The notes under the pieces are model-generated. The model worked only from the letters and a program-made list of their open reading frames with translations. It made no database searches and was not told the origin of the DNA. The position numbers and the translations under genes were made by a program. Shown in pieces: positions 32,111 to 57,929 of a stretch of 64,000 bases of DNA; position 1 is the first letter of the stretch, and each line of letters opens with the position of its first letter. The stretch comes from Lytechinus pictus (Eukaryota): positions 11,718,001 to 11,782,000 of the forward strand of contig NC_087246.1 of assembly GCF_037042905.1 (NCBI RefSeq), in the 5' to 3' direction.

Positions 32111-33980
32111 ACGACAAACCCCACCATAGAAGACTTGAGACCAGTTTCGCTAACAGACCATTTCACAAAGATCCTGGAGAAATTTATTGCGAAGTGGTTG
32201 GTGGGTGACATTGGCAATGCGATCGATAAGTCACAGTTCGGCAACAGGAAAGGTCATTCAACTGCACATTATTTGATAGATATACTAAACACAATTCATC
32301 AGAATGCCGATAAACCAAAAATGGTCTCAACCCTGGTGGCTACGGACTTCAGCAAAGCCTTCGACAGGATAGATCATGGGCTAGCTGTTAGGAAACTGCT
32401 TGATATGGGGGCATCTCCGTCCTTGGTGGCTTGGATCTCCAATTTCCTCTCCAACCGAAAGCAGAATGTACGTTATCTGTCTCAACTCTCTGATTGGATG
32501 GAGATTTCGGCAGGTACTCCGCAAGGCACTCGACTTGGACCGATAATCTTCGTCTGAATGATCAACGACTTGTTCAAGGATAGCGACCACCAATATTGGA
32601 AATATGTCGACGACCTCTCCCTGCTTGAATGTAGGAAATCAACGGATCAATTAAAAATCCAAGAAGAAGTAAATGAACTGGAGAAATGGACCAAAGACAA
32701 CTGCATGAAACTGAACCCTAAGAAATGTGTCGTAATGAACGTTCAGTTTATGAGAAACCCAACATGTGTCCCAAAAGTAATAATTGATGATCAAGAACTA
32801 GGTGAAGTCCATCTTGTTAAACTTTTAGGTGTGTTCGTACAAGATGACTTAAAATGGTCATACCATGTTACAGAAATGGTCAAGGCAGCGAGCATGAGGC
32901 TACACATGATGCGGATCCTGAAAGGTTTTCGGCTACCAGTTGAGGATTTGAAAGTAGTATATTGTTCTTATGTGCGCCCGAAACTCGAATACTGCGCCCC
33001 GGTTTGGCATTCTGGCCTAACGCAGAAAGAAAAAAAAATGATTGAGAGAATTCAGAAACGTGCGTGTCGCCTCATGCTTGGCCAAAGGTACACCAGTTAT
33101 GATGATGCCCTCACTGTTCTTCACCTCCCAACATTAGAAGAGAGAAGGGAAACGTTAACACTGAAACTAGCAAGTAACCTTACAAAAGAGACGTCCCCAT
33201 TCCATCACTGGCTCCCTCCTACCAGAGCCATTAGCACCTCCCGTAACCTGCGGAATGCTGGGAAATACTCTGAAATTAAGTGCAAAACCCAGCGCTATAA
33301 AAAGAGCGCACTGCCATTCATTGTGAGGCTACTCAACTCAAAATCTGAATAACTGGCTAAATTATAATAATGATAACAAATAATACATTGTATGAATAAT
33401 TGATTTTTTAGTTGGCAGTATGAAAAAATGAAATGATTAGCATCAGAGTTACTTATTCTACTTATAATATAGATGCAGATCATAAATTATGCTCAAATTA
33501 TAAATCTTAATGCTCTTGGACACATTTTTTTTTTTTTAACACTTTTATACATTTCAAGCTGGATATCCCGCTAGTCTTTATCATGTTTGCCAAGGCAATA
33601 CTGTATATCAGTGTTTTAACGATACAAAAAATATTTCTATTGCCACCCATATTGTATAAATTATATGACCTTAAACTTTGTATCCTTAAGCCTATACTTG
33701 CACCGAAAGATGCATGGCATATATATCACAAAACAACCGTATTGAATTATATTATATTATGAAATCTTCATCTAGTAAAATCATTTGTTAAATCCTATTA
33801 CCAATATCCATTTATTCAGATCAGAGTTTAGTTACTTATGTCTTATTTCAATATCTTATTTTTAACAACTATTGTGTGTGTATTGTTTGTATTAATCATT
33901 TTTGTAAATTGCACGCAATTCAGCCGTGAGGCTGCTATATGCAAATGTTTTTATACCAAAATAAATATTTTAAAAAAAAT
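32111..33980 (+). mobile_element. 5'-truncated non-LTR retrotransposon (LINE, CR1/L2-group-like RT) with one premature stop
   Basis: RT motifs LRPVSLT, QFG, DFSKAFD, GTPQGTRLGP, YVDD and a C-terminal YVRPKLEYCAPVW...IERIQKRACR. In-frame TGA at 32555-32557, ORF stop at 33352. The AT-rich 3' UTR ends in AATAAA plus an A-run near 33960-33979. Confidence 0.9.
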
Positions 33981-38479: not shown

Positions 38480-40066
38480 TCAATAAGCCTTATACTGATT
38501 ATTGCGTATATAGTCCTTTACGTTCCTCCATGTGCGGGAACTCAAACATGGTGTTTTAGAGAGAGCAGTCTCAATTTCAGCTTTCCCTGGGAGTGTTTTT
38601 ACATGACTATGGCTGGTCATATATGACCTGAAAGCAGTTGCTACTGCTAACTTTTCCTTGTATGTCCATTTCTGTTTCTTGGTTGCTTTCTTAGACTGCT
38701 TGATTCTTTCCCTGGAAGTTTTCTTCTTTGTTGCATCCTTCTTTGCAGGGCTTTTTGAAGCATTCAGGACTACATGATAGAAAAATACAAAATTGAGTAG
38801 CATTTGAACAAAAGAGTGGTGCAAAGGCGAGCACATAATACACCCGCCTGTAAAGTGGAAAAATTGAGTTATTATTCAAGCAAGAAAGAGGAAGGTGGCA
38901 ATTTGACCTTTGACCTCAAAATCAATAGAATTCCTGAGATCCATGCTAGTATCATACACACCAAATTATATGAGCACTTAAGTTAAACTAAGGGAAATGA
39001 AACCTTTGGAGCAAGTGGGCTTGTGTGGAAACAGAAATATCAAAGAAGAAGAACAAAGAAAGTTTGAGAAAAGTCTGACAAATAATGAGAAAGTTATGAG
39101 CCTTTGACCATGGCGATCACTAATGCTATGGGGATCCTCCCATTTGCAATGTGACAAAGATGTGTGATGTCACATGTGAACAACTTTCCCTTTGATGGAC
39201 TATGAAATACCCCCAAAATGTATCTTTTTGTTCTTTCTTTTGGTGATACAAACTCTTTATCCATAATGTATTCTTTGAAAATCTGTATTACATGCCCTCC
39301 TATAGAAAGAATACATGATCTACTCATGGATGTGATAACAGAGGCAGTTTAAGTGAAATAATATAGAAAAGTAATGGGAGAGTTGTTTACAAGTGACATT
39401 ACACATCTTTATCGCATTGCCAATTAGAGGAGCTCCATGGCATGAATGATTGCAATATTCAAATGCTCATAACTTTCTTATTATTTGTCCCGATTTTTCT
39501 CAAACTTTCGTTGATCTGTTTCTTTGATTTTTCTGTTTTCACACAAGCTTTCTTGTTCCAAAGATTTCATTTTCCTTTAAACTGAAGTTATCGTGTTTAC
39601 AAAGAAAAGTTAACGGACTGACAGACAGACGGACGGACACCGAGCATGACACCATAAATAATACGTCTCACAGGACGGGCGAGTAAAAAAAGTTATGTGT
39701 CGTGACTAATGGGGCGTTGCAAGAAACTTGTGATCAATTGCGAGTCTATTTTCAGTCTCTAAATCAATCATAGGTATTGCATTTAATTACAAATTTGCAA
39801 CTGATTGCTAATCTGCTCCATGAAACAAGGAGTGTAATCTGATTTGCTACAGCTAAAATTGATCAATCAATTGTAAAATTGCAAAAGAATATTTGTAATT
39901 GATTGCAAATATTTTCTTGCAACACCCCCTAAGGCTTTTGTTAAGGTACCCTGTACGTTACCTGCATGGTTACAAGTATTTTGCCCATGTGATTCTGTCT
40001 CATCATCTACAAGTAATCCATCCTTCTCATGATCAGGTGCTTCAAGGGACTTAGCCATAGGCACAA
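38480..40066 (-). CDS. Last two exons (40066-39962, 38769-38480) of the recombinase-derived isoform; basic region plus Myb/SANT-like C-terminal domain
   Basis: Phase-1 GT-AG junctions join in frame to the large exon. The sequence KQKWTYKEKLAVATAF...LPGKAEIETAL..PCLSSRTWRNVKDYIRN matches the C-terminal W..E..AV..PGK..R.W..VK..RN pattern of this protein family. Candidate polyA signal at 38441-38436. Confidence 0.8.
38806..39690 (+). mobile_element. Helentron/pearl-like element with (ACAG)/(ACGG) microsatellite, interrupted by another repeat
   Basis: TGACCTTTGACCT core, GACAGACAGACGGACGGAC near the 3' end, and terminal TACACCCGCC / GGGCGAGTA inverted motifs. Confidence 0.5.
39711..39928. mobile_element. 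MITE
   Basis: Ends GGGGCGTTGCAAGAAA / TTTCTTGCAACACCCC. Confidence 0.65.
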
Positions 40067-40746
40067 CTGATAAAAAAAAAATTCCATTCTACATACTGTT
40101 ACAATACTTAGACCTCTGCAGGATTCAAAATAATTCTATCTAATGGACACCAATTATAAAATGATACATGGACAATTATTTTCAAATATATTACATCTAC
40201 CAAAAGTGAATTATTATTTACACAAATCTTTATCATAGCCAGAATGTTTTACATTCTGGGGTTTTGGTTAGGGTTCATGGTTCTGTGATGCACATAAATG
40301 AATGCCAGTTTTATGGTGATAGGTATTTTCTTCAGGATGGTTATTTCACACACAGTACTAATATATCCTATTTGATTTACTGTATCAAGGCTCACACCAG
40401 GTATACATGATGGATGTTCGGACATAGATATGTAAACTTAGAAAATAATGAAAGATACCTTTCATAACTCACCATCTATTTAAAAATAACAAATAATTCT
40501 ACAAATTTATCAAAGATTGACCCTTCCAAATCTAATTTTTGTTTATGAAAAAAAAACCTCAATAATAACACACCTGGGTCCAGTAACATGTCATGAATGA
40601 TACATTTGACTGTACAAACTAGTATAACTAAGTCGATGGCAAACTGTTTACAAAAACTTATACAAATTCTAACAATTTTAAGAATTAATGTCACATGCCC
40701 TAGTAATTTGATCTGTAATGAGAATGATCCAATTTCATATCTTTAC

Positions 40747-43083
40747 CTTCATCTACAAGGATCTCAGCTAGTGTTTTTCCTGCCATTTCTGGCATTGCTC
40801 CATTCTCCATCAAAAACAGAAGCTTTGACACTTTTGCCACTATTAACACGTCTTCAGGTAAGCCAAAGTCCTGATGGGGTGTTCCGATGCCTTGTCCAAG
40901 AAACAATGTCAAAATACCTTGTTCATTCTTTCTCAAGTTCATCACCTGATAAATGGTAGCAATGTGATGTTTCAGCTCTGTTGATTGGATGTTCTCTGGA
41001 TGTTTTGCACCACACCTAACTGCATGCGTATGGATTGCATCATTCCCTTTGATATGACCTGTAGAGTTGAGGAGAGGAAAGAAGAAAGGATTCTCATCCA
41101 AGACACCTGCATCTGTACGTCTACGTCTGAGAAGATTCATGGCTTCTTTCACACCTTGGGTTAGTAACAAAGGCACTTTCCTATCATCCTCTCCGGTGGT
41201 TTCCATCACCCACATCACTCTGCAGAGCTGTTTCTCAAACTCTGTTAATCCTCCAAGCGTGCTCTTTCCATTGTTTCCTGAGACACACTCATCAAAATCA
41301 AACACTTTAATCTTCGATGGATCACCGGATCGTTTGCAATTGAATACCAATACTGACGTTAAGACCACCTCACTCAATTCTGTGAATGGCCCAGCTACAT
41401 TTTTTATTGACTGGTGTAGGGCCTCCTTTCCTTCCTGTACCTTTTGATTCAAATAAATTGATAGCTTCATTACATCATTTGTGAGAGACGAGTACTTTGT
41501 ACTCTTCAATATTTCTGCATTTTCAGAATGGCAAGCCATTTGATCATTCCATTCATGTTCACATAATTTGATGAAGTTTTTTGCTCTTGTCTCCAAACCT
41601 TCATCTCTGTCACAAACTGCCATTCCAAGGAGTATTCCTCCTGCATGCTTCAATGTATACCTTATTTTCAGAGTGAATGAAAGACTAGGCATGTGTTTCT
41701 TCCCATTACACCCTGCTGCACATCTGGCTGCTTTTACAACATTTCTGAACTTCACAGGGTCAATGACATCTGAGAATGATGCATTTTTCTCATTTGTGAT
41801 CTCCCTGTAGGCAAGTAACAGTCGCCCGATATTGCGAAGTTTGCCTTTGATGTCATAAAAGTGCTCTTCTTCTTGCCCTAACTTGAAAACCACTTTTTCT
41901 GCCAATTTTTTCACAAGCATGTCGTCCTTGATGAGAGCTGACACATCATCTTCCCTCATGCTTGAAAATATTTTATTGACCCGTTCACTTGCATCACCAG
42001 TTGTTGGTAGCAGAAAGGAGCTTAGACTAATCAACTTTTGTTTTTTCTTCTTCTCACCTCCAGTCAGCTTGCTATCCTGGTTACTTTTCTTTACCTTGCA
42101 AGAATGCTTCCATAAATCTGCCTTAGCAAAGAAGCCAAAGCAAGACATACATGGTACATAGTTCTTATAACTGACTTCATGAGTAGGTCTATACACAGGA
42201 ATTATTGTTCCTTTACCTTCTCTTAATACCTGTGTATTGTGATAAAAGTTTCCTGAGTTTCTCATCCTTGTTAACCTCTCAAGTTTCAAGAGTGGGTCAC
42301 TTGTATTTAACCACTGGATTACCTGGGGTTCGTGTTGGTGTTCCTTACAAACTAAATGTCTTGTAAGTTTCATCTGGAGTTTGTGGCAGAAAGGACAGTA
42401 CGCTCCTTTGTCAAATTTCCTCCTTACACTATTGTTTGAACGCATTACTTTGATGTCACAGTTTGTGACATCATTCTTGTCTTCACTACCCATAGTCTTG
42501 TCATCAGACTCCATGGATGTGACAGAATCACCTTCTGCAGCATCATCAATTCCTAATGCACATAATTCATTATCAGCATCACTTTCAGCATGATGTGTTG
42601 TAACATGATTTGATATTGAATACTCAAATTTACTTTTCACTAAGTGCCTCTTGCACCTATTTACTACTGAAGTACCCTTAAATATTGTTGATATGAGGTG
42701 TTCGGTAGTGGCATCCACGGTCAATTCAGATTCAGAATCACATTCTGGTGAAGTGGGGTTGTCAGAATCACCATCTATTATAACAGACTCTGAATCAGGA
42801 TCTACCAGTTCTAGTGAGATGGGGCTGTCAGCATCAGAGGCACCAATACTCCATACACATTCTTGATAAGGTTCCTGTAGAAGTGACTCCGAAACAGGAT
42901 CCAGTTCTGGTGAGGTGGGGCTGTCAGTAGCAGAGGAACCAATACTCCATACACACTCTTGATAAGGATCCTGTAGAAGTGACGAGTGATTTTCAGTAGC
43001 ACCATCCACACTCATCATAGACTCGAAATAAGGATCCACTTGTGAATTGAGGTCACCAATAGCTTCCTTACTGTTTGCTGATT
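40747..43083 (-). CDS. Large exon (2337 nt, phase 1-1) encoding two zinc-binding motifs and a Crypton-like tyrosine-recombinase-fold domain with degenerate active site
   Basis: Uninterrupted 779-codon frame with acceptor at 43084-85 and donor G|GTAAAG at 40746. Motifs YCPFCHK..KLTRHL..H, GNFYHNTQVLREGKG, YVPCMSCFGFF..LWKH, FNCKRSGD, RKVPLLLT, NPFFF, STELKHHIAT, FLGQ, LPE..AKVSKLL resemble animal transposon-type tyrosine recombinases (FNRRRxGE, GKRGRKVPVLL, STKLRKHIAT, FLGH..H..YY.LPE). Confidence 0.8.
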
Positions 43084-43448
43084 CTGTAGATCAAAGACAT
43101 ATACCGGTAATTTGAATGATTAGAATTACAGTCAAATGACCAATACTATACCCAATCATTGAGATATTGCTCATATAAATGTCAATTCATTGTCACGCTA
43201 TAGGAATAGTGGTCACAGTGATTTTTTTTTAATTACAGTTTGTTTAACATTTGCAATCTGAGAGCATTCTGAGTGTTTGACCAATCATGAGGCAAGTCTG
43301 TCTTGCACTTAAAACTGTTGAGGGGCATTTATTTATTTATTCACCCCAAATATGATATCAGCCAATGATCATTTGCACCACGTATGAACACAATTGGTGC
43401 AGAAATAAGAGCAAGAAACAAAAATTTCGATATTTTCAAAATAAGAAA

Positions 43449-44412
43449 GACTAGAAAAGCTCGGTGGGTCGTGCGGCCGAGCACATGTATCCCCCAAACC
43501 CACCGCATCATCCATCATTGCGATATATCGAGCTCACTCAGAAATTATCATGGCAACAACAACCCTGCCCACATTTTGCCTCTGGGTACAAAATTTGATG
43601 ACAACAATATAACGCAGCAGCGTGATCTTTCAGCCACCTTGCACTGAGAATTTACATATAGTTGTAATATTCTTTCAAGTGCAAAATGTTGCCCGGCACC
43701 CATGACAAGGACGCAGATCACAAGCATATTCTTCAAAGCATTTTTTCTTAAAAAGACTTCACACTTTGTACAAAATTAAAATACAGACATTTGCATAATA
43801 TTTTGGAGATGTTTTGGGTAATATTTCAAATGTTTGGAACAATATTGCACATATGTGGTTTAAATTTGGATATGATAGATTGCCCTGAAGTATATGACGG
43901 GTGCCAATAGTCAAGAGGCTCTAATTTTGAGCCTGTTTATTTGAACACTTGAAACAAGCAAGTAGAAAACAAACTACATCTTTTCTATATGTGAACAGCA
44001 TGGTCAGGTACCTTGGAATGAAGTAAGCTTGATACATTGGATTGTCATAGTTATTGGTAACACTCACTTGGATTGTTACCATGGCAATAAAGACCCCCCC
44101 CCACTAAATATGATAGGCATCTTCGCTTTACCTTCTAATATTGCTTTTGTGTGCCAACCATTATGACAAACTGGAAAAAAATGCAGAAGTTACAGGTTTT
44201 ACCAAATTTTCCACAAAAATATCGTTACCATTGCAATCATGTCTCCACCCACTCCAAAATCAATAGGCGGCTTTGCTTTATCATAATGGACCTTCATGAC
44301 AAATTTGAAGATGATCGGAGAAGAAACGCAGCCAGTAGAGCACTCACAAGGTAATCTTTGCGATGAGGCCAAATCCATAGTATCCTCCAAACTCTGTTCG
44401 GGGGATACAATT
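43449..44412 (+). mobile_element. Helentron/pearl-like non-autonomous element
   Basis: Subterminal inverted motif TGTATCCCCC (~43486) / GGGGGATACA (~44400-44409), with a 3' hairpin GTATCCTCC...GGGGGATAC. Confidence 0.55.
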
Positions 44413-45367
44413 ATGTGTATGGCCTCCCACTATTTGACCTTTTTAACCGACAGATGACCTCTGACCTTACTATCTTCATCAAAATAAGTATGGTATTTAC
44501 CCAAAGATCATTTGTATCGACTATGAACAAAAATGATGCCGAAATAAAGAAATAATAGCAAGTTTAACAAAAAATTTAACAGTTTTGTAACAGATCAACA
44601 GGAACATTTTTAAATCAAACCAACAGGAATAATGAATTACTGGGTCTCTGCCCAACTTCGATCAGGCCAAACAACTATAACTGGAGATCTCAGGCAAAGA
44701 GATTTCCCTATCTAGAGTCCTGATGCTATGGTAACTTAATATTCAGCATCAATATTATGGAAATATTAGGGTATCAGCATTTACAACAGGGTATCATAGT
44801 CCTTGATGTTTAAAGCATGGACTCAACAGGTTTACATCTTAAATGGTAATGTTTTATGGAAATATTGTTTCACTTCTGGATGTACGCTATCAATTGCAGG
44901 GGATTAGATCTGTCTTTTGAATAGAGAGTCATGTGTTTGGACCTCTCCTATGATGTGTTTTTCTTTCTGCAAGAAACTTATCCATATTGTGATGCATTCG
45001 ACCCAGATGAGGTTCTACCTGGCAGGATTAATCACTTGAATGCATTGAGCATCAAAATTAAGCAGCAGATCGAGCTTAAGCCTTGGTAATAATAATTGTC
45101 CCTTTTATCCTTTATCTTAAAATCCAGCTTTCATCATTGTTATCAATATTCAAGATTTAAATCTCAACTCAGAGAATTAGTGGATATTACTTTTAGAAAA
45201 GTTTGGGATTTAAATCCTTGTAATTGAGAGTGAATAAATATCTCAGGCACAGAGATTTTTTGCGAGTATGGCTAATCATAGTTAGATGTAAAAGTAGTAT
45301 CTACTGCAGCCATTACGTATGCAACTTATAAGTACGGATCCTATAACAGGCAAAATATTTGTTAAAG

Positions 45368-45414
<47 letters not shown>

Positions 45415-46129
45415 GTATATATATAATTGCATGATTGATCTAAGGTAGATATGAAGTTTGTCTCTATTGCTGCATTTAAATCATTTGAACCTGAAAATTT
45501 ATTTAAGATTTAAGCATAAGTCCAGAGACAGACTGCTCATTGCAAATTCATGTAAAGTGTGTGAATTGTATGTTGATTTTGTTTGAATGATTGATCAAAG
45601 GTAAATGTGAAGTTAGTCTCTACCGCAGCCATCTTGTCTGCAACTAGTTCTTGACTTTTAACATTGATATGGGCCCTGAAACATAAACAATATATATAAA
45701 GTTTAACAGTAGCTTGCAACTAGGCTACAGTGTTATTGTACAGGGATATAAGGACAACTAGTCAGTAGTTTTTATCATTAAAATATCATGTCCATGGATA
45801 CAACTTCTAACTTCACAATTTCTAATCCATAAAGGGAGTGTTTACCTATATAGCTACTGCATGAAAGCACTAGAAATTTACTCCCACTTCCTACTAGATT
45901 TTCATTTAACACAAGGGACCAATTGTATAGACTTTTTCCTTTAAAAATAATCTGGTAAAATGATGACACAGAGTTAGCACAGTCCTGCCAGTGGCATTTA
46001 AGGGATAAAATCCGGTAAAAAATAACTTTGAAGTTTTCTATGGCTAAATTTTTATTTTTGCAATAGAGGGTCCTCATTGAAGAGGGGGAAATACAGATCA
46101 CGGTCTTGCTTAAGTCAGTCATGTCCATG

Positions 46130-46550
46130 ATTTATTATCATCATCATCATCGTCGGCTTCCTTTATTGTAACCATCATCTTCATCAGTCATCCACCATCA
46201 GCAGCACCTTCACCATCATTATCATCAACATCACCACCATAATATCTTGTCATAATCACAATAATTTCTTGTCATAATCACCATTATTTATCATCATCAC
46301 TCATTCATCATCATCACTCATTCATCACCAGCAGCAGTCAGTCATTCATCATCAGCAGCCGCATCTTCATCTTCATCATCATCATCATCATCATCAATCT
46401 ATCATCATTACCATCATCTTCATCATCATCATCAGTTCACAACCACCACCATCAGCCATTGTCATGATCACGATAATCATTGTCATTCATCATCATTCAT
46501 CATCATCATCATCATATGCATGATTATCATAATTATCACCACAATCATCT
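46130..46550. repeat. Degenerate (CAT)n microsatellite / low-complexity tract
   Basis: Long imperfect CAT/CAC/CAG trinucleotide run. A similar short tract lies at 26997-27065. Confidence 0.9.
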
Positions 46551-47634
46551 TTCACAAGAAATACTTTATTCCATGAAAAAGCAGACATATAGCATAAATT
46601 TTATGAAAGACATATTCTGATACAGGGAATCAGCCACCAAAAACAAAGACAATGAAAACTGTCGTTTTTAAACGTACAGATACGCCTTGGTATTTGCCAT
46701 TGTCAAAACACCTGTATGTTCTCCTTAAGATGCAGATAATCATTAATAAGTGGCGGAACTTGTTTGATCAAAGAAAGAATCAAGTTGAATGTAGAGTTTG
46801 GGTAGTCCATTCAGGACCAACAATTGCCCGTGAAAGATACATGGTGTAACGTGAAACCCACTAAACTCTTCTTCTTTGCCATGGAAACCTTCAGAAGTTA
46901 CAAGTTGAATGTCCATCTCTACTAGCTACAATGGTTGATTTAACATTTCTTTTCAAAATCCCTCTGAGATATTTTCACTTTTCTAAACCTTACTCAATAT
47001 TAAAGTTTTGAAATGATTAATTCAATGATATGTAATGTACATGTGGAAGGCTGTATCACATGTATTGTACAAAAAGGTAGACTACATGAAGTATTAATGT
47101 GTTCTGCTTGTAAAATTTTTCTATTAAAAGGTAAGCCAATCCACATTCAGAGTCACTTAAATGAAAAAAGGAAAAATCAAACAAATGTAACAATAAAAAT
47201 TACATCAAAAGCAGATAAGAAAGTGTAACATTTTAAAGCTTCGCTTAATTTCACAAAAACAGAACATATACATGCACATTCCGGTCAGTATGCAAATAAT
47301 GGAACTAATGGCATCACCTAATCATCATTTCCTTTGTATGTTATCATGAGAAATTTAAAATACAATGTTCCTTATTATAGAGTTTGTGAAGTAAGGTTTC
47401 ATAAGGATCGCCATAGTTGCAACCTACTGTCATTCAACAAACATGCATCCTTTGGCTCTAACTAAAAATCAACTTACTGATACATGTAAGTGGAAATGGA
47501 CTTCAACAACATACCAGTATACCAGTGTGTGTGAATGGTAATTTATGTCTGGGACCAACCCACAAAGTCATCTAAAACTTAAAAGACACTTAATAAACTC
47601 CAACTCAAACCAAAGTATGGGGGAAAGATCCCTG

Positions 47635-48637
47635 GGGCCCGTTTCTCAACACCGTCATAAGTCTAACTTCTTGACTAAATCGGAGATAGTGAGCTACTTG
47701 TCCGCTAACCGTTTCACGACGCCCACTTTACCAAGATCGGGTACAACAACCTCACTAAATAATTATGACACCTCCGAACCTGTCATAACTTTTTTCTTAG
47801 TGACGTAGTGGCATCATGTGGGTAGACTATGACATGCAAAAGTGCCAAGAAATTTGAAAATTATAATCTTACGTAATCAATCATAGAGGTTGAAATTACA
47901 TTGCAAAACAGGTGTGATAGATCATTCAATAATAATTGTGATGCACAGAAACTATAAAAACTGTTGGTACAACGCAACAAAGACATTAATTTTGAAATAG
48001 TAAATAATCAAATCAATAAAGATTCTACCACGTCAGGTCATCCATAACTGGACTCGTTGTTTTCAGCCCCTTATCAACACTTTGATAAATTCTCTAATTG
48101 ATAAAATCTCTAATTTATGCAAATAATTTGTCAATTGTGTGTTTCGGTATCTAAACATTTTAAAATTTATGTTAAACTATATTTTGATGATGTTTGGAAC
48201 CATTAATAAACGTATAATTATCATTATTTTACAAAGAAAACCATTTTGGTTTACTTCCGTAAACTATCAAAATTTACTATCCCGGGGGTACCCATCTCAA
48301 CGTTCACATGTGATATTATAGTCATGAAAAGAATTATTCATAATTTTATTTTCTCAGCAATTGAATGCTCCAGTCGTCATGGTTTAAGTATGCATGGTAC
48401 ATATTTTGCCTCTGCTATCATTTTGATTAGATTTATTTCCAAATTAATCACAATAATTGCATTTTTATCATTTGTGACTAAGGCTACGTCTCGTCTGCTC
48501 TTTCCACCGATAGTATCGATATCAAGGGATTCTAGTTAGGAAGCATTTCGTGAAACGGGTTTAGTAAGATTGGAACTAACTCCGTGGTTGGCGGATAAAG
48601 ATATGACTAACTTGTCCATGTGTTGAGAAACGGGCCC
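47635..48637. mobile_element. PIF/Harbinger-like non-autonomous element just downstream of the zinc-finger stop
   Basis: CTG|GGGCCCGTTTCTCAACA ... TGTTGAGAAACGGGCCC|CTG: 17-bp perfect TIR and 3-bp TSD. Confidence 0.85.
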
Positions 48638-48765
48638 CTGAATACATTCTCTATAATATGGGAAATCCCCAGGTCCTTTGCAAGCAACCCAAATTAAAGA
48701 TGAATCATATTGATACACAATTCTTTTGAGATGATGTTGAATTCTGGTTTCATAAAAGGCCTTGT

Positions 48766-50204
48766 TTAATTTGATTCTCCTGTGTGCACACGGAAATGAC
48801 TTTTTAGATGAGATTTGCGAGAAAATGTTCTCTTGCAGAATGCACATTCAAATGGTTTTAATCCAGAGTGAACTTTCGAATGACGTACAAGATCACTCTT
48901 CTGGGCAAAGCATTTCTTACAATGTGAACATTCATATTTCTTTCCACCTATGTGCATTTGGAGATGACCTTCAAGATAATATTTACGGGTAAATCCTTTC
49001 CCACAGAAAAAACATTCATGTAGCTTCTCTCCTGTATGTGTTTTGACATGCTGCTCAAGATCAGATTGACAATCAAATGTTTGTTTACAATGAGGACATA
49101 GATGTGAACATTCTTTGTTGTTTCCTTGGATGCGACGTCTTGGGTTACTTTGATCAGAAACTCCTTTCTTTTTCCCTGAATGTGTTCTCAGATGGCGTTC
49201 AAGACGACTTTGAGTGGAAAATAACTTCTTACAGTAAAAACACTCATGACACTTTTCTACAGCGTGTTTTTTGACATGACGTTGCATATCTGTTTTAAAA
49301 CAGAAAGTTTTCTTACATATGAAACATTCATACGGCTTTTCTCCTGTGTGTATACGAATGTGACATTTTAGATAATAATTACGAGCAAATCGTTTCTTGC
49401 AGTATGAACATTCGTATGGCTTTGCAAAAGTACAAACGTCCATATGATGTTCAAGATCACTCTTCTGAGAGAAACCCATCTCACAATGTGAACATTCATA
49501 TGGCTTTTCTCCTGGATGCGTTCTGTCATGATGCTGAAGATCAGACTGACAATCAACATTTTGTTTACTTTGAGTCTTGCAGAATGAAGGTTCATTCTTT
49601 TCTCCTGCATGTGTTACAAGATGACTCTCAAGATCAGTTTGAGAGGAAAATATCTTCTTACAGTATGAACATTCGTGATGCTTTTCTGCACTGTGTTTTT
49701 TGACATGATGGTGCAAATCCATTCTAAAAGTGAAGGTTTTCTTACAAATGGAACATTCATATGGCTTCTCTCCCGTGTGCATACGAATGTGGCTTTTTAG
49801 ATGACATTTACGTGAAAATGTTTTCGTGCAGAATGTACATTCATATGGCTTTAATCCAGAGTGGATTTTCAAATGACGTACAAGATCGCACTTCTGGGCA
49901 AAGCATTTCTTACAATGTGGACATTCATATTGTTTTCCACCTCTGTGCACTTGGAGATGGCCTTGTAGATAATATTTACGGGTAAATCCTTTCCCGCAGT
50001 AAGAACATTCATGTAGCTTCTCTTCTGTTATTCCTGTATGTGTTTTGACAAGTTGCCCAACAGCGGGTTGAAAAGAAAAAGCTTGTTTGCCGTTTGAACT
50101 TTCATTTAGCTTCCTTCCAGAATGTACAGTTGAATGGATTTTATCTCCACTGTTGAGTAACATATCATGATCTTTCCCATCTTGTTTGTTGTCAATAGTG
50201 TATT
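48766..50204 (-). CDS. Terminal exon encoding a tandem C2H2 zinc-finger array (12 canonical fingers, 1 C2HC, 1 degenerate)
   Basis: Repeated CxxC-x12-HxxxH with TGEKP-like linkers. Phase-1 acceptor TTTTTTGTCTTTGACTTCAG|AA at 50205-06. Stop TAA at 48766. Confidence 0.92.
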
Positions 50205-52443
50205 CTGAAGTCAAAGACAAAAAATAAGGAAAACATCCTGTCACCACTCCAATGACATGCCTGCCATAAGGACTTTCTACAAGCAGGTAAATGCAAATTA
50301 TCAGGGAAACAGACAACAGATGAACTAATACCCAATTGTGGATATGACTGTCAACCCTAGAAGAAAACTGAAAAGCCATACAGGATGCTGTCCTGTAAAT
50401 CCCCCATGGCATCGCATGGAGTGAAGCAGGCAAGCCAATTAATATTGATATTTGACCTTTTGACCCCTAGATGACCTTGACCCCATTATCCTCAATAACA
50501 CATGTATTACCAAAGGGTGATTTGATGCGGAAATAAAGAAATGAGAGAAAGTTACACACAAAAAATTCAAAAAAGGATAGACATGACCTCTTATCATTTG
50601 ACCTTTTGAACCCTAGATGACCTGAGACCCCATCACCCTCATCCGAGATGCCAACCTGAACAAGAACATTTCAGTATTTTAAAGGCTGAAAATCAGTATT
50701 TTAGTAAGAAAATCAGTACAATCACAAAAATACCAAAGGACAACACATATAAACTGAAACTTTAGTAATAAGTAATTTGCATGAAACCACCAGTATCCTT
50801 TCCGTAATAATTACTGGAAACCACTACTATTTGGCACTTCTATCTCATAGACACACGTGTGGTATTATCCAAGGATCATAACAAGTATGAACTTAGTAGA
50901 TGCAGAAATAAAGAAATGAGAGCAAGTTGAACAAAAACATTTAGGAACAGACTACTAACAGACCAACAGGAAAAGTGATAACAGGTTCATTCTCTACCAA
51001 ACTTCGTTCAGGCGAGACAAAATCATTTTTAAAGTCATGTGTCTGGATGTTTAAAAAGATTTTAAAATATATAGGTGAAACTTTTGATAAAAAACATGAT
51101 ATATAATAATCATTTTCATCCGACAAAAGTTGTTGTTTTCACACTTCATTTCTGTTTGTATATTTTTAGATTATGGTAAAGCTGAAGATCTTAGCTTTAA
51201 TATGATATAGGTTTTAGAGTTATTTTAGATGGGTCAGCATCTAGCATTTCATAGGCTAAGTATATTTGAAGTTTGAAAACAAGAATGCTACACTCTGATT
51301 GGTCAAAGAGACCACACAACCACCCAAATTCCAACGGATCCATGCTGGGGCCTCTCCAAGGTCACGCTCACCACATGGTTATCTCATCAAGTTACCAGCA
51401 CCTGAAACCTTATACAGTCAATTAGAACTCTGTATTTTATGCTACTCAGAATTTTCAGAAATAAGAAATCTTGTCTTGTATCTTGATGGGAAAAGCTGGC
51501 TCTTGACCCATCTAAAAGTGCTACATATCAGAGTAACATTATGAGAAACTAGATTTTCAGCTTTCTGATGATATAAATAGTATTTGGGCCAAAATAAGTT
51601 TTTTACAATTTGCAAGATAAATCAGAAGAAAATTCTGTTTTGAGGCATCTGTTCAGGTTTGAAATTCACTCTTTATCAATATATTTTAATCAAAATAAAT
51701 GACCAATATAAAAGAGTAACATTTATCTATAGTACAAAAATAATCAATTTTACTTGAAGTTAAAGTGGTTAAATTTTGTTATGAAGAAAGCCTTGTTGTA
51801 CACGAGATTTTGAAATTCAGCCACAAGAGGATTTGGATAAATCGTACTCATTAGCAGAGGGACCTGCAGTCTGACCGAAACTTACTTGAAAAGGGAAAAT
51901 AAACTATATATACCATGGGCCGAAGACATAACACCAGAGAGAAAAGGGCCATAGCGGCATAGCCTGGATGGCTTATACAGTTAATGAAAAGCGAGAGCTG
52001 GGAAAGAGGATTCATGCAAAGCAAAAAGAAAATCGCCCTAAAAGTGCGCTTTCACACTCACAAGTACAACATAGGCTCCCACACAAGGCAAAAGACTGTC
52101 TTCTCCAACAGATGAAAAGAGAAGGGGCTGAGGAAACAGCTCAACTTTACCAGTAGTGGCAGTCTGACACACATTATCACAATCAACCAATCAAATCACA
52201 AATTAATCATGTCCATATAGACATTTTTAAACACAACTGTGTCAATTTAAAATTCCCCTCTAAAAAGCAAAATTTAGCCAAGAAAATGTTGAATCTGTGC
52301 TATATTGCCAAAGCAATAAAAAAAAAACACACAAAAGCATAAAAAAGGGTCTTCAATGTTAGGGTATCAAAGTAAATCAAGTCCTCAGCCTTAAAAATAT
52401 CAAACTGAAATAAATCTCAATTATGACAGTATGAAATGATATA

Positions 52444-54004
52444 CACTACTCAAAAAAAGTTAAGGACCACTTTTTAAAACGTACATAAAGATTTTATACA
52501 AGGTGTTTTATTTCTGGAAATACCTCAGTACAACTGTCCTAAATGTCCTTAAACACGCTGTGATCAATTTCACGCATGGGTGGTTTCAGTTGTTGCACAA
52601 TGTCTCTCGCATCACTGCACATCCTGAAAAGTGGGCCCCGAGGGGTATCAGCTACCGACATGAAGTGGTAAAAACGAATGTCTGAGTGTCTTTCAGGCAG
52701 TTCAGTAACGAGTGTGACCACCTCCTGCAGCAATAACGGCTTCACAGCGCTGTCTCATGGAGCTGATGAGGCGATTGATGTCTCTGACGTCCAGTGCATC
52801 CCATGCAGCCTCCAGAGCCACACCCAGCTGCTGCAGTCCAAGTGGATGGGCTTCGAGCTGCTCGAGACTCCTCCCCATCATGTCCCAGACGTGCTCTATC
52901 GGGTTTAAGTCCGGGGACCTCGCTGGCCACTCCATACGCTCAATCCCCTGGCCCTCAAGGAACTCGGTCACCACCCTAGCTCGGTGGGCACGGGCATTGT
53001 CATCCATGAAAATGATGTTTTGTCCCACATTTTCTGCAAATGGCACCACTATAGGTTCAAGGACCTCATCCCTGTACCTCACTCCTGTCATTGCTCCCCC
53101 TGGGACCACGTAGAGACGAGTACGGTTGGCGTAGGTGATGCCTCCCCACACCATGACGCTGCCTCCCCCATAACGGTCATGTTCTGCAATACAGGGGTCT
53201 GCAAATCTCTCTCCTGGTCGCCTCCAGACTCTCGAACGTCCATCATTGTGGTCAAGGGAAAATCTGCTCTCATCTGTGAACAGAACTCTACGCCATTGCT
53301 GTCTGGTCCATCTGACATGCTCCCGGGCCCAGTTGAGACGAATTCTTCTGTGAGCAGGGGTGAGTGGGACACACTGAGCTGGCCGTCTGGCATGCATATT
53401 GGCTCTGTGAAGTCGGTTACGGATTGTTTGAGTGGAAACAATCACTCCAGTTGCCGCAGCGAAGTCATTGTTGAGGCGGCGTGCACTGTGAAAGCGGTTG
53501 CGGAGGCTGAGATTCGTCAAGTAGCGATCATCTCTAGGGGTTGTCGAAACTGGTCGGCCACTGCGGGGTCTCTCGGAGTATAGCCCTGTCTCTCGGTGTC
53601 TTTGATTTGCTCTGCTAATGACACTGTGTGACACGCCCATCATTCTGGCTACTCTTCGCTGACTGAGGCCAGCTTCCAGCATCCCTAGGGCTCTGGCTAC
53701 ATCTGTTTCACTTAGGTGGTGTCTTGGCATTGCTGTTGTAGGCAAGTTGTTGATTGTAGAGACTAAAGACAGAAAATGCATTTGAATCCACATTTGTACC
53801 ACTTCACAATGGGCCCACTTTTCAGGATATGCAATAATGCGAGAGACATCATGCAACAACTGAAACCACCCATGTGTGAAATTGTTACAGGGTGTTTGAG
53901 GAGATTCAAGACAGCCATATTCGGGTATTTCTAGAAATACAACACCCGGTTTGAAAATTGTATACACACATTAAAAAGTGGTCCTTAACTTTTTTTGAGT
54001 AGTG
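52444..54004 (-). mobile_element. Full-length Tc1-family DNA transposon (1561 bp)
   Basis: TA duplication. Perfect outer TIR CACTACTCAAAAAAAGTTAAGGACCACTTTTT, with imperfect inverted similarity to ~195 bp. Intact transposase inside. Confidence 0.96.
52702..53730 (-). CDS. Tc1 DD34E transposase, 342 aa, intact
   Basis: Starts MPRHHLSE with a paired-like HTH, then RSGRP, VLFTDESRF, VMVWGGI, FMDDNARAH-...-SPDLNPIEHVW. There are 34 residues between the second D and the E. Confidence 0.95.
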   Translation of the reverse strand: MPRHHLSETDVARALGMLEAGLSQRRVARMMGVSHSVISRANQRHRETGLYSERPRSGRPVSTTPRDDRYLTNLSLRNRFHSARRLNNDFAAATGVIVSTQTIRNRLHRANMHARRPAQCVPLTPAHRRIRLNWAREHVRWTRQQWRRVLFTDESRFSLDHNDGRSRVWRRPGERFADPCIAEHDRYGGGSVMVWGGITYANRTRLYVVPGGAMTGVRYRDEVLEPIVVPFAENVGQNIIFMDDNARAHRARVVTEFLEGQGIERMEWPARSPDLNPIEHVWDMMGRSLEQLEAHPLGLQQLGVALEAAWDALDVRDINRLISSMRQRCEAVIAAGGGHTRY

Positions 54005-55023
54005 TATTAATCACAATTCTTATACGGTATGGTACAATTTGACTTTATATGGGAGTGGGTGATTAACAGTATGCCATTAGAAATAGGACCAAGGGACATG
54101 AAATGTGGTTTTATGGTCCACTTTTTTTTAAATGTGTGGAGGTACATGGGTGATGAGTGATATTAAAGTATGCTTTCCCAGCCTTGGTAATAACCCCCGT
54201 CTTATTACGGTTTCAGGAGACCTTGAAAGAGAGTGCCAAATCACTAGAAACTGGCAATATTATATGATTCATTTAAATTTATTTAAATTTAAACTAAAAA
54301 AATACAAATAAAACTGCCTCTTAACATTACCAAATGATGATTGGCCTTGTTTTCAGAAGCCAATAACATTATTAATTCATTTAGGGATTCCTGTGTACCA
54401 TTTGGGGCCCCTGTTGGACTGATTCTTATCAAATTTAGACTGTGGTTGTTATCACGTTCTGCTGAAATATGAAAATGAAATGATTTGGTACTTGTTGCAA
54501 GTGGTGATGAATTCTTCAGCATCAGTTAGATTATCTGACTCCGTATATCTGAGACATACCGAGACAAAGCTCAGCAATATTTTTCATAGTATTGAAGAAT
54601 ATAAGACAATCACTTGACTTACTTAACAGACATTATTGTAAAAAAATGTATGCTTCAAACCTACAAACATTTAAAGTTGTGTAGACAATCTAAGGACATT
54701 AGAGTGATGTAGTTATGTTATGAACTTTGATTATAAGGAATTCAGCATGATGTTGTGAGTTTGCCCCTAACTTTTTTAACATTATCAATTTACTCTGCAC
54801 TAATTTCATTAAAGAATCTGAATGGACAAGTCTTGTGATGCGTTGTGACAAAAAAACATGTCGCTTTAATAGGCAGAAGACATTTTGTTTAAATTGACTT
54901 AGTACACAAGAACGTTGTCAAGTTTTGTTGCTGTGAACATTATGCAATGAATCTGGCAATGCACTACGCACAATATCAGTACTTAGATCTAACTGGAACA
55001 ATATGCTTGAATATAAATATTAC

Positions 55024-56890
55024 CTGATGTTGAGGCTTGTTCTGAATCTTTCCTTTCTCCACCAGAACTTGTTGAAGAAATAGGATTTGAACTGTCCACT
55101 TCTTGCTTGAGTTTCCCTAAAATAAATTATAATTCTAAGATTTTTTTTTTTTTTAATTTCAGGATCCAATATTATATCCATACAGATGAGATTTTATAAA
55201 ATGTTGAGCAATTGTTACAACACTATGTACGTGTTACTGTTTTCTTCCAGATATCAGTAAGCACTATATTCACTGAAAAGAGGGGATATTTCACAAGTCA
55301 AAATACACATAAAGCCTAGTCTACTTAGGATTAAAGAGCAAATTGACAGTACATTGATAAGCCAGGAGCTGAAATAAAGGAGAAATGCACCTTGTTGATC
55401 TCTTCAGCTTAATAATACAAAAACATCAGCTCCAAATAGAACTATATATTTGAGGAGGAAAATACATTCTTTTTACCATATTACATACACAAGGGCATTT
55501 TCAGAAAGAGATAATGGAAAATTTATCTATTTTAACCATTGCTTTGGAAATGAAATTACATGTTTACACTTTGTTCAAAGACAGGTCCCTAAATAAAGAC
55601 ATTGTAATATCTATATTTCAATCTTCATCTGAAGAAGTACCTTTCACAAACATGTTATTTATAACAAGCCAGTGAGGACTGCATCAGCCTCCACACCCAG
55701 TTTTAGTAGGGTTTAACTCTTAATATGCCATCAGAAAATAAGCTCCATAGACTTTATGTGATACCAATGGGTAACTAGGGCATGATGACATTAATACAAA
55801 TACAATGTACCTTCTCGACTCGGTGGAACAAGATTTTCACAAGTCTCTCCTGAAGGTTCTTGCTTGATGTAGATTTTGGTTGAAAGGTGTGTTACTTCAT
55901 CTGAAATGCCATCTGTGTTTGAAACCATCCCGTCTTGTTCTCCCTTGATGATAACCTCTATGACAGATGGATTTGTTTTGTCGCTCAACTGTATGGATCT
56001 TTTTTCATTTTCTTGCACTCCTTTTACTGATTGGGTAGAATCTTCCGAGTTAGTATTCAAAGACAGCATCTTTTGCTTGACCTGCACTCCTAGGAATGAC
56101 TGAACCCTTTTCTCTGAGCTGGCATTAGAAGGTAATGGAGTATGTACAGTTCCATCTTCAGCCTCAAGCTTGATCTGCACTCCTATGACTGACTCTACAG
56201 TTTCTTCTAATAGATTATGTAAGGTCCTCATTTCATCCTTTCCTATTAGACTTACATGCCCTGAAAAGAGAGAAAAGAGCTTGTTACTTGCCATTACACT
56301 TACAAGAAAGGTAAAGACAAAGGCCATGGGGTTGTTGTGACATTTCACAATTGATGCATTTGTATCATATCGCTCTGCCATTTTGCAAGAACATAACACG
56401 AATCCTAATAACTATAAATGGGAGGAATGTCTCTGGTAATCACCAATGGTCGACTGAGGAACAGAAATAAATATTTTGTTCAAATACAAAGAAGCATTTT
56501 TTGTGATTTCCAAAAGTACAGATAACAAATAATGGACATTATATTTTATATTATCCGAAATGTTTAAATACAAAGAAGCATTTCTTTGTAATTTCAAAAA
56601 GTAAACATAACAGATTGTGGACATTTTGGATATTATGAGGACGACATCATCCTCAGCACATGTGCTCTTCTTTGGGGGGGGGTTGCAATATATTTAGTGT
56701 TGATGAAAACAAGAATATGACATGACAAATGAAGAGGCAACACTGGCAGCTGGCTAAAGAATTGTTATCTTCAAAATTTGAATATTATCCTCTAGTGTTT
56801 GATGATGATACCTTCATTTGGCTTCAAACTTAAATCTGTATTAGTGTGCCTCTCTTCTTTCTCTGGTGCTTCTTGCTTGATCCTGATCAT
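55024..56890 (-). CDS. Shared 5' coding exons (56890/56908-56812, 56260-55811, 55116-55024) of the zinc-finger / recombinase locus; low-complexity N-terminus with repeated psi-K-x-E motifs
   Basis: GT-AG exons all end in phase 1. ATG in ACCAACATGA context at 56890. Motifs IKQE, IKLE, IKGE, IKQE, LKQE. A possible extra small exon begins at 54461. Confidence 0.75.
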
Positions 56891-57174
56891 GTTGGTGTCA
56901 TCTGTAACCTGTTGAAAAAAAAGGCATGAAGGTGAAGCTGATTCAAGGTAAAGAGCAGTGGCAGCTGATTAATGATGATTTCATTGTGTAGATTTTTTAA
57001 TAAAAGTAATTCGTTAAAAGAAACTTAACCACTCTCCTGGACGGATTCATTTTTCCCCCTTTTCCATTCGCAGTCGTGTATTTAGAAAAGGAATGCCAGA
57101 ATAAAGTCTGCAAGGAAAATCGGTGAGATTTATAAATTTTCTTGTAATTGATCTTAACCCAGCCCGTTATCCTG

Positions 57175-57929
57175 GGGCCGTATTCTGAAAATTGTCTTAA
57201 GAGAAATATTCTTGTATCTTTGGAGTTACAATAAAATCCGTATTCTGAAAATTCTTGTATCTTTTCTTGTAACTTACACTGAGCGCGTATGTCAGAGCTA
57301 TAATGATGCGTAAGTTAAAAACGGCGCCTAAATATCTATGTGTGCAAGATTACATATCAAGATAATAGGTATTCTGAAAATTCTCTTATCTTTGCGTTCC
57401 GTTAACTTCCTTGCAAAAATACAAGAAAATTTACAAGAGGTACGGGGCTATTGTAACTTAATGTTGCATGCGATATTTCTCGATCAAAAATAATAATTTC
57501 TTGCTGCATCCCGCAAGAAAGAACATCATGCTTTACTGCATTCTGAAGACATTACAGAGACGGATTGGTAGACTTTTCAGCAATTAAAAATTGGTAAAGA
57601 AAATATGACTCTGAGATCAGCCACGTGTATTTTTAGCAGTGGCGCACATGCATAAGCGTCGGGGGCGCAAGGGAAATACACCTCATGTCAACAATGCGCT
57701 TATAATATTATTCAGAAGAGACACTTCTATTGGTTGGCCTAAGCATATAACAACTTTAATGATTGATTGATCATCATTGATGACAGAATGTTGGGCGTGT
57801 CAGAGATAAAAAAGGGGACGTCCTTACAGAGATAAGACAATTTTCAGAATACCCATTTAAGACAATTTTAGCGAGCTGTTTGCTTGCTAAGTTACATGAA
57901 AAGTTAAGACAATTTTCAGAATACCACCC
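57175..57929. mobile_element. PIF/Harbinger-like MITE with subterminal repeats
   Basis: CTG|GGGCCGTATTCTGAAAATTGTCTTAA ... TTAAGACAATTTTCAGAATACCACCC|CTG. GTATTCTGAAAATT is repeated at both ends. Confidence 0.8.

Follow-up and report, generated by a model that had tools for sequence, protein, structure and literature searches.

A long reading frame on the minus strand of a 64,000-nucleotide stretch of the Lytechinus pictus genome (NC_087246.1, positions 11,718,001 to 11,782,000; the window) raises the question of what a recombinase gene has become once its active site is taken apart and its frame stays open. The original prediction for this locus was domestication as a non-catalytic DNA or chromatin binder. 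From the data presented here we favor, with moderate confidence, a domesticated recombinase that acts as a non-catalytic DNA binder.

The window is AT-rich. The open reading frame extends from 40700 to 43039 and has the predicted 779 stop-free codons when counted from the first listed start, or 796 codons from stop to stop. No stop interrupts the frame of the main coding exon from its first base onward. This exon encodes an acidic N-terminal region that contains a tandem duplication of 33 aa, as well as the two zinc fingers, the core-binding domain and the disabled catalytic domain (Table 1). Stranded RNA reads from two individuals covered the frame on one strand only and skipped both introns. 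Both splice junctions were observed in raw reads (runs X10 and X9) and in contigs (runs X2 and X1), and a single 2,890-nt RNA contig from a third run joined all three exons and carried 91 further upstream bases. These reads and contigs confirmed the spliced downstream exons that had been postulated. Expression was modest, with a depth of about 5-10 when 6% of each run was read. The spliced frame is open over 910 codons and ends in the C-terminal domain of the family described below, followed by a 3' UTR that reaches to at least 38350. We propose that this is a host gene with at least four exons.

Table 1. Positions in the window of the exons, introns, domains and active-site residues of the gene.
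Feature	Position	Strand	Evidence
Main coding exon	40747..43083	-	RNA contigs and reads over 40747-43086, one strand only
Linker exon, 105 nt, in frame	39962..40066	-	Junctions 40747>40066 and 39962>38769
Last coding exon	38480..38769	-	Stop codon 38480-38482; RNA and frame check
Intron 1, after the main exon	40067-40746	-	GT..AG ends, RNA-confirmed
Intron 2	38770-39961	-	GT..AG ends, RNA-confirmed
Zinc finger 1	42338..42397	-	C215, C218, H228, H234; weak C2H2 matches
Zinc finger 2	42098..42151	-	C297, C300, H312, C314; columns invariant in family alignment
Helical core-binding (N-terminal DNA-binding) domain, approximate limits	41525..41959	-	Model residues ~166-310 align to N-terminal domains of XerD/XerC/Cre
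Recombinase catalytic-domain fold, approximate limits	40775..41497	-	VIA to XerD C-terminal domain; Foldseek to Xer
C-terminal three-helix domain, W..E..A...PGK...L..R.W..K....N	38492..38668	-	Common to sea-urchin and fish relatives
Arg-I retained, R570 in FNCKRSGD	41330..41332	-	Family alignment and codon listing
Beta-hairpin catalytic Lys to Glu, E617 in GEDDRK	41189..41191	-	K in 62/63 relatives
Arg-II to Lys, K690 in STELKHH	40970..40972	-	R in 62/63 relatives
LGH His to Gln, Q716	40892..40894	-	H in 62/63 relatives
Nucleophile loop: His to Pro, P721 (40877-40879); Tyr to Phe, F725 (40865-40867, QDFGLPE)	40865..40879	-	Y in 62/63 and H in 59/63 relatives
Candidate upstream exon, 93 nt, inferred	55024..55116	-	Phase-compatible donor, from sequence only

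Searched alone at E ≤ 1, the protein matched no Pfam family, Phage_integrase (PF00589) included, and a sequence search of solved structures (PDB) with the ORF alone returned nothing useful; a family profile run against the PDB sequences returned the zinc fingers only. Among 64 family members, eight did match PF00589 at E ≤ 0.1, with a best E of 3.8e-6, and two paralogs scanned singly stayed below its gathering score. An AlphaFold2 model of residues 196-779 had a mean pLDDT of 83.6 and its lowest confidence in the nucleophile loop (model residues 520-532). Foldseek placed XerH, XerD, Cre, XerA and lambda integrase in the top ranks of the PDB, with probabilities up to 0.92; over the entire 584-residue model, E values were only about 0.07-0.2. 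Against the Swiss-Prot models, the best 30 matches were all whole XerC, XerD or XerS proteins at a probability of 1.00, with E down to 2e-4. VIA-align superposed 158 residues on the XerD catalytic domain (Z 10.5, rmsd 3.2) and 281-287 residues on Cre, covering both domains; its remaining matches were recombinases and type IB topoisomerases. The recombinase fold assumed in the original prediction was thus recovered, as whole XerD, XerC, XerH and Cre were matched by the model. By its predicted fold, the protein belongs to the tyrosine recombinase (YR) / type IB topoisomerase superfamily.

The modules on either side of this core are also preserved. In zinc finger 1, the ligand columns, conserved in at least 90% of the family, are all kept in the window protein. 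The C-terminal domain, on a separate exon joined by RNA, keeps 11 of 11 invariant columns and was modelled as three helices with a pLDDT of 83-90. Its best fold matches were homeodomain and Myb domains, none of them significant (E > 1), and a Pfam search with this domain alone gave no meaningful match.

On the model, the correspondence between the conserved family residues and the canonical YR active site is sound, because the fold matches, relatives match PF00589, the Lys column falls into a hairpin turn (E617 lies between model strands 415-420 and 426-431) and the spacing from LGH to Tyr corresponds to the nine residues of XerD, LGH-(9)-Y. In a 64-sequence alignment, 62 of the 63 relatives read R-K-R-H-H-Y at the catalytic columns, whereas the window protein reads R-E-K-Q-P-F. 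Likewise, of roughly 170 full-length domains taken from the 150 top-ranking database representatives, 133 have the intact signature. The family pattern given in the original prediction is therefore a real one whose motif strings agree with the consensus, and all the changes named there (GEDDRK, STELKHH, FLGQ and PHQDFGLPE, with the Arg of FNCKRSGD kept) are present on the minus strand within 40850-41350. Two further residues differ nearby: the family Glu near Arg-I is Asp in the window protein (D573), and the codon just after F725 (40862-40864) encodes Gly instead of Arg (G726). Activity above 5% in Cre strictly depends on just two residues, the nucleophilic Tyr and the Lys of the hairpin (PMC2943603). 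Since both are replaced here, in addition to Arg-II and two His, we strongly infer from the sequence that the protein has no recombinase activity. Arg-I alone of the catalytic set is kept; descent and fold, but not catalytic function, therefore make the protein a YR.

The parent family was delimited by an exhaustive HMMER search of 1.84 billion representatives, which returned 4,837 clusters at E ≤ 0.001 and 809 at E ≤ 1e-30. Its members stem from sea urchins, a sea cucumber, a sea slug and many teleosts, with Strongylocentrotus, Lytechinus, Diadema and Holothuria among the genera named, and are labelled 'uncharacterized protein' or 'SET domain-containing protein'. They share two zinc fingers, a helical plus alpha/beta core of about 400 residues and a short C-terminal domain; echinoid members usually have an N-terminal SET domain too. 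We found no description of the family in the searchable literature, and it is apparently a very large, unnamed animal family. The best single-module relative of the window protein is P0012 (E 1e-148), and in the tree the gene falls into a 100/100 clade of seven with Lytechinus and Strongylocentrotus proteins, the echinoid SET-YR group. The window gene shares with this SET-YR or 'KMT5A-like' family its two zinc fingers, its C-terminal domain and a fold made up of core-binding and catalytic domains. Unlike its SET-YR relatives, it lacks R-K-R-H-H-Y, and its terminal branch of 1.04 is the longest in the clade, about twice the 0.4-0.5 of its clade mates. A SET domain was also missing from the 64-kb window, where tblastn with full-length P0012, P0015 and L002 matched recombinase and C-terminal parts only.

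In the genome of the window, the family is represented by about 20 low-copy, heterogeneous loci, some of which carry stops. Two of them, L013 and L014, are located on different chromosomes, are identical over the 586 residues compared and have the full R-K-R-H-H-Y set, which is intact in paralog L002 as well. L002 matches XP_054770981 (L. pictus) with 99.5% identity and paralog L005 matches LOC121417348 (L. variegatus) with 99.8%. Low-copy heterogeneous loci, some with stops, and an identical pair on different chromosomes make the parent family look like a mobile element. Catalysis may also have been lost separately in L005, in a Diadema protein and in giant two-module percomorph fish proteins. 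A single ancient inactivation common to the window gene, P0077 and L005/P0180 was considered and rejected, as these fall into three different clades of the tree.

The reading that we favor would start from such a low-copy, transposon-like animal family with zinc fingers, a two-domain YR and a C-terminal three-helix domain, one copy of which would have been fixed at a single locus in this lineage. This copy would have lost the chemistry of DNA cleavage, namely the general-acid Lys, Arg-II, two His and the Tyr nucleophile, whereas its open frame, the two zinc fingers, the C-terminal domain and the fold of the core-binding and catalytic domains would have been retained. As a host gene that is transcribed and spliced, it would encode a protein that clamps DNA in the manner of a recombinase without cleaving it, aided by the two zinc fingers and the C-terminal three-helix bundle. 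Its role might be that of a transcription factor or chromatin factor, or else that of a competitor or binder at sites recognised by intact relatives. As to the predicted domestication, the fold, the disabled site, the single copy and the transcription and splicing all speak for it; the binding of DNA or chromatin is the part that we deduce, because the DNA-binding domains are retained.

The dead subunit might instead regulate its own family in a repressor-like way, by binding the ends or targets of intact paralogs or by joining their tetramers. Tyrosine recombinases act as tetramers on paired sites, paralogs with an intact R-K-R-H-H-Y set (L002, L013/L014) coexist in the genome, and all DNA-binding modules are retained in the window protein. 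The structural matches moreover include MrpR and YopR of SPbeta and SroF of phi3T (Z 6.5-7.0), catalysis-free repressors in which the YR fold is reused for DNA binding and regulation. These are prokaryotic phage regulators without sequence relationship to the window gene, and the likeness is one of principle only. With the closest intact paralog just 44% identical, however, shared site specificity and heteromers are doubtful, and we regard such a role as unlikely.

Is the gene maintained at all, or is it a dying copy, that is an immobilised element or duplicate that became non-functional rather recently, is still transcribed from a neighbouring promoter and is so far free of stops? Among the 68 columns in which at least 90% of relatives agree, 54 are unchanged in the gene and 14 (21%) differ, and the long terminal branch is what relaxed constraint would give as well. 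The losses are not evenly spread, however, but cluster in the active site, with changes at 5 of 6 catalytic columns versus 9 of the 62 other conserved columns (Fisher P = 0.001); several of these nine flank catalytic residues. This clustering exceeds chance and bears out the observation as first made. In simulations of neutral substitution on the coding sequence, which count substitutions only and ignore indels, the frame stayed open in 0/300 runs at 20% amino-acid change and in 10/300 at 5%. Drift large enough for the observed changes should therefore have closed the 910-codon frame. Against decay also speak the retained zinc-finger ligands and C-terminal invariant residues, the precise splicing of both introns and the fact that other family copies in the same genome do carry stops.

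Polymorphism data point in both directions. Compared with the reference, the two RNA individuals showed 16 coding SNPs, 6 synonymous and 10 non-synonymous, with no stop among them, and the sole indel polymorphism seen in the coding sequence was an in-frame TAT insertion (3 nt); the frame is open in all three individuals. The pN/pS of 0.45 was not significantly below 1 (P = 0.10; 16 sites, two individuals), due to so few sites, and leaves room for decay. Synonymous sites are saturated in comparisons with paralogs at 44% amino-acid identity.

The absence of an ortholog would fit a dying copy, too. The HMMER search of 1.84 billion representatives and word-indexed protein searches returned none from other species and nothing above 47% identity. 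The databases searched do contain proteins with L. pictus and L. variegatus RefSeq labels. The eight sequencing runs in which the stretch was recovered all bear a single species label. Since the window gene's own product is also absent from these databases, the lack of an ortholog may reflect annotation, not biology. A protein search via the neighbouring C2H2 gene returned generic vertebrate zinc-finger proteins and no echinoderm. Dispersed near-identical copies were looked for in the genome and none were found. The locus is single-copy, with the next best paralog at 44% identity and no DNA-level copy of its exons detected elsewhere in the genome; its only multi-copy part is a 590-bp intronic repeat. 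Taken on both sides, the evidence makes a dying copy quite unlikely. We argue that selection has preserved the frame but no longer constrained the active site, and the gene appears to be under purifying selection. Because no ortholog was retrieved and the pN/pS test gave the P value above, the case for domestication rests on within-genome evidence.

That the protein is still an enzyme, with other residues for cleavage or with a different reaction, is highly improbable: Arg-I is kept, K621 lies four residues past the lost Lys and the change of Arg-II to Lys is conservative, but the K621 column is not conserved in the family (T in 34/63 and K in 17/63 relatives), the nucleophile is Phe in an aligned loop, PHQDFGLPE, without any Tyr, and any substitution of Tyr or Lys leaves Cre with at most 5% activity (PMC2943603).

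How does a domesticated, non-cutting recombinase compare with known systems? The conversion of mobile-element recombinases into non-cutting DNA-binding host proteins is a known route to regulators, as for ZMYM, QRICH1 and ALOG, and to our knowledge all animal cases on record derive from Crypton or DIRS-type elements. The closest known kind to the window gene is that of the Crypton-derived DUF3504 genes (PMC3212892, PMC13465315), which are ZMYM2/3/4, QRICH1, KCTD1 and KIAA1958 (Kojima & Jurka 2011, PMC3212892). In both, a eukaryotic transposon-type YR turned into a spliced host gene, with most catalytic residues gone and joined with zinc fingers and other domains. The source family differs, however. 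Animal Cryptons match DUF3504 at E ≤ 8e-12 (PMC3212892), whereas no DUF3504 match was obtained for the window protein or listed for its relatives, this domain (PF12012) not being among the 25 Pfam families most matched over 64 family members at E ≤ 0.1. Crypton-derived human proteins were likewise missing from the 30 best Swiss-Prot structural matches. As the family is not Crypton/DUF3504, the parallel with ZMYM and QRICH1 is one of kind, not of ancestry, in agreement with the independent origin proposed beforehand. Crypton-derived genes are furthermore conserved across vertebrates or bilaterians, whereas no ortholog of the window gene was found outside one genus-level genome.

With the Xer, Cre and lambda-Int proteins of bacteria and phages, the window protein shares the two-domain architecture and fold as well as the position of the Lys in the beta-hairpin turn. 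It differs from them by a sequence identity of 8-13%, zinc fingers added at the N-terminus, an additional domain at the C-terminus, a longer stretch inserted between Arg-I and Lys and the replaced catalytic residues. If domestication holds true, the gene adds a case whose source is another YR family, very large (about 4,800 clusters at 50% identity) and seemingly without a name. The clean split between chemistry lost and architecture kept would inform on the uses of the recombinase fold after recombination stops. With the sea urchin becoming a genetic model, binding sites and knock-out phenotypes are testable.

Another observation concerned the 5' end of the gene. Upstream of the junction at 43086, RNA contigs carried 24 to 91 additional bases. 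Since genomic 43087-43089 is not AG, the true acceptor of the main exon is probably CAG/AAT at 43083, preceded by an upstream exon that ends in CAG. In the interval 43087-57500, the donor of the candidate upstream exon is the only CAG/GT(A/G) that closes a phase-1 frame open over 25 codons or more. A C2H2-array exon has its acceptor near 50207, similar to that at 43083 and of the same phase, so that shared 5' exons may splice to either the C2H2-array exon or the dead-recombinase exon. This would fit a joint reading that we hold possible, if on balance doubtful: the window gene would be one of several independent exaptations of an undescribed animal YR family, possibly as an alternative product of one transcription unit, with catalysis separately lost elsewhere in the family. 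Should the alternative splicing be true, one N-terminus would carry two interchangeable DNA-binding bodies.

The dead-recombinase gene is accompanied in the same genome by a second family member with a compromised active site (L005; coordinates of this and the other features are collected in the table below). In L005, Arg-II is replaced by Lys, and the nucleophilic Tyr is gone through a five-residue deletion. This locus is 99.8% identical to P0180, the annotated 878-aa L. variegatus protein LOC121417348. In the family tree, L005 and the window gene fall into separate clades, so their catalytic losses are independent of each other. Degenerate catalytic signatures were also seen in P0013 from Diadema setosum, in P0077 from an ENA contig and likewise in the percomorph fish members P0017, P0019, P0024, P0041 and P0073. 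Among the degenerate members are fish proteins of 2,400-4,150 aa that carry two recombinase modules in tandem, with signatures such as R-E-K-H-H-Q-Y-R. Also among them are the sea cucumber protein P0011, the sea slug protein P0020 and P0018, from an ENA contig, in which only the N-terminal half is present, repeated 4-9 times.

Features of the window and family loci of the same genome (plain numbers are window positions)
Feature	Position	Strand	Remarks
Reverse-transcriptase-like ORF pair	32135-33352		
Repeat, ~590 bp	38990-39580		intron between linker exon and last exon
Tandem duplication, ~100 bp	42786-42983		88% identical
C2H2 zinc-finger array exon	ORF 48766-50433		acceptor ~50207; upstream of dead-recombinase exon
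ORF, 421 codons	52702-53967	minus	intact
Two candidate upstream exons	55024-55116 and 55806		phase-1 donors
L002	G000:C21:10273196-10274980 + upstream		closest intact paralog of window gene
L005	G000:C6:7017561-7018943	minus	family member, active site compromised
L013	G000:C3:57922417-57924174		
L014	G000:C16:11921696-11923453		

The open frame of the closest intact paralog, L002, comprises 1,069 codons; it opens on the C-terminal portion of a SET domain (Pfam E 7e-4) and continues into tandem repeats of about 40 aa. Its L. pictus counterpart is LOC129278875, and S. purpuratus relatives at several loci are annotated as 'SET domain-containing protein'. L013 and L014 come from a distant subfamily whose catalytic residues are intact; their open frames of 1,591-1,654 codons include a long tandem-repeat region at the N-terminus. 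These two loci, on separate chromosomes, were identical across all 586 residues compared, and a broken copy on C9 was 98% identical, which together suggests recent mobility.

Upstream of the dead-recombinase exon lies an exon coding for a C2H2 zinc-finger array. The acceptors of the two exons, that of the dead-recombinase exon being at 43083, are alike in sequence and identical in phase. Two exons located further upstream are candidates for a 5' part common to both bodies and, as judged from the sequence, the transcript may be spliced alternatively to one of two distinct DNA-binding bodies, the C2H2 array or the dead recombinase. In the N-terminal region of the window gene, the tandem duplication encodes a 33-aa motif, acidic and rich in Ser/Pro, in two copies, and an in-frame TAT insertion polymorphism after 42775 adjoins it.

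The putative long intron of the window gene also contains the 421-codon ORF, which on reading looks like a Tc1/mariner-type transposase and sits within a GC-rich island (0.465 vs ~0.35 in the surroundings). The repeat in the last intron matched its own opposite strand at 72-75% and is thus palindromic and MITE-like. At least 40 scored copies with 90-92% identity were found in the genome search, where the first look gave 6,747 candidates, and the repeat sequence was present at very high abundance in RNA runs.
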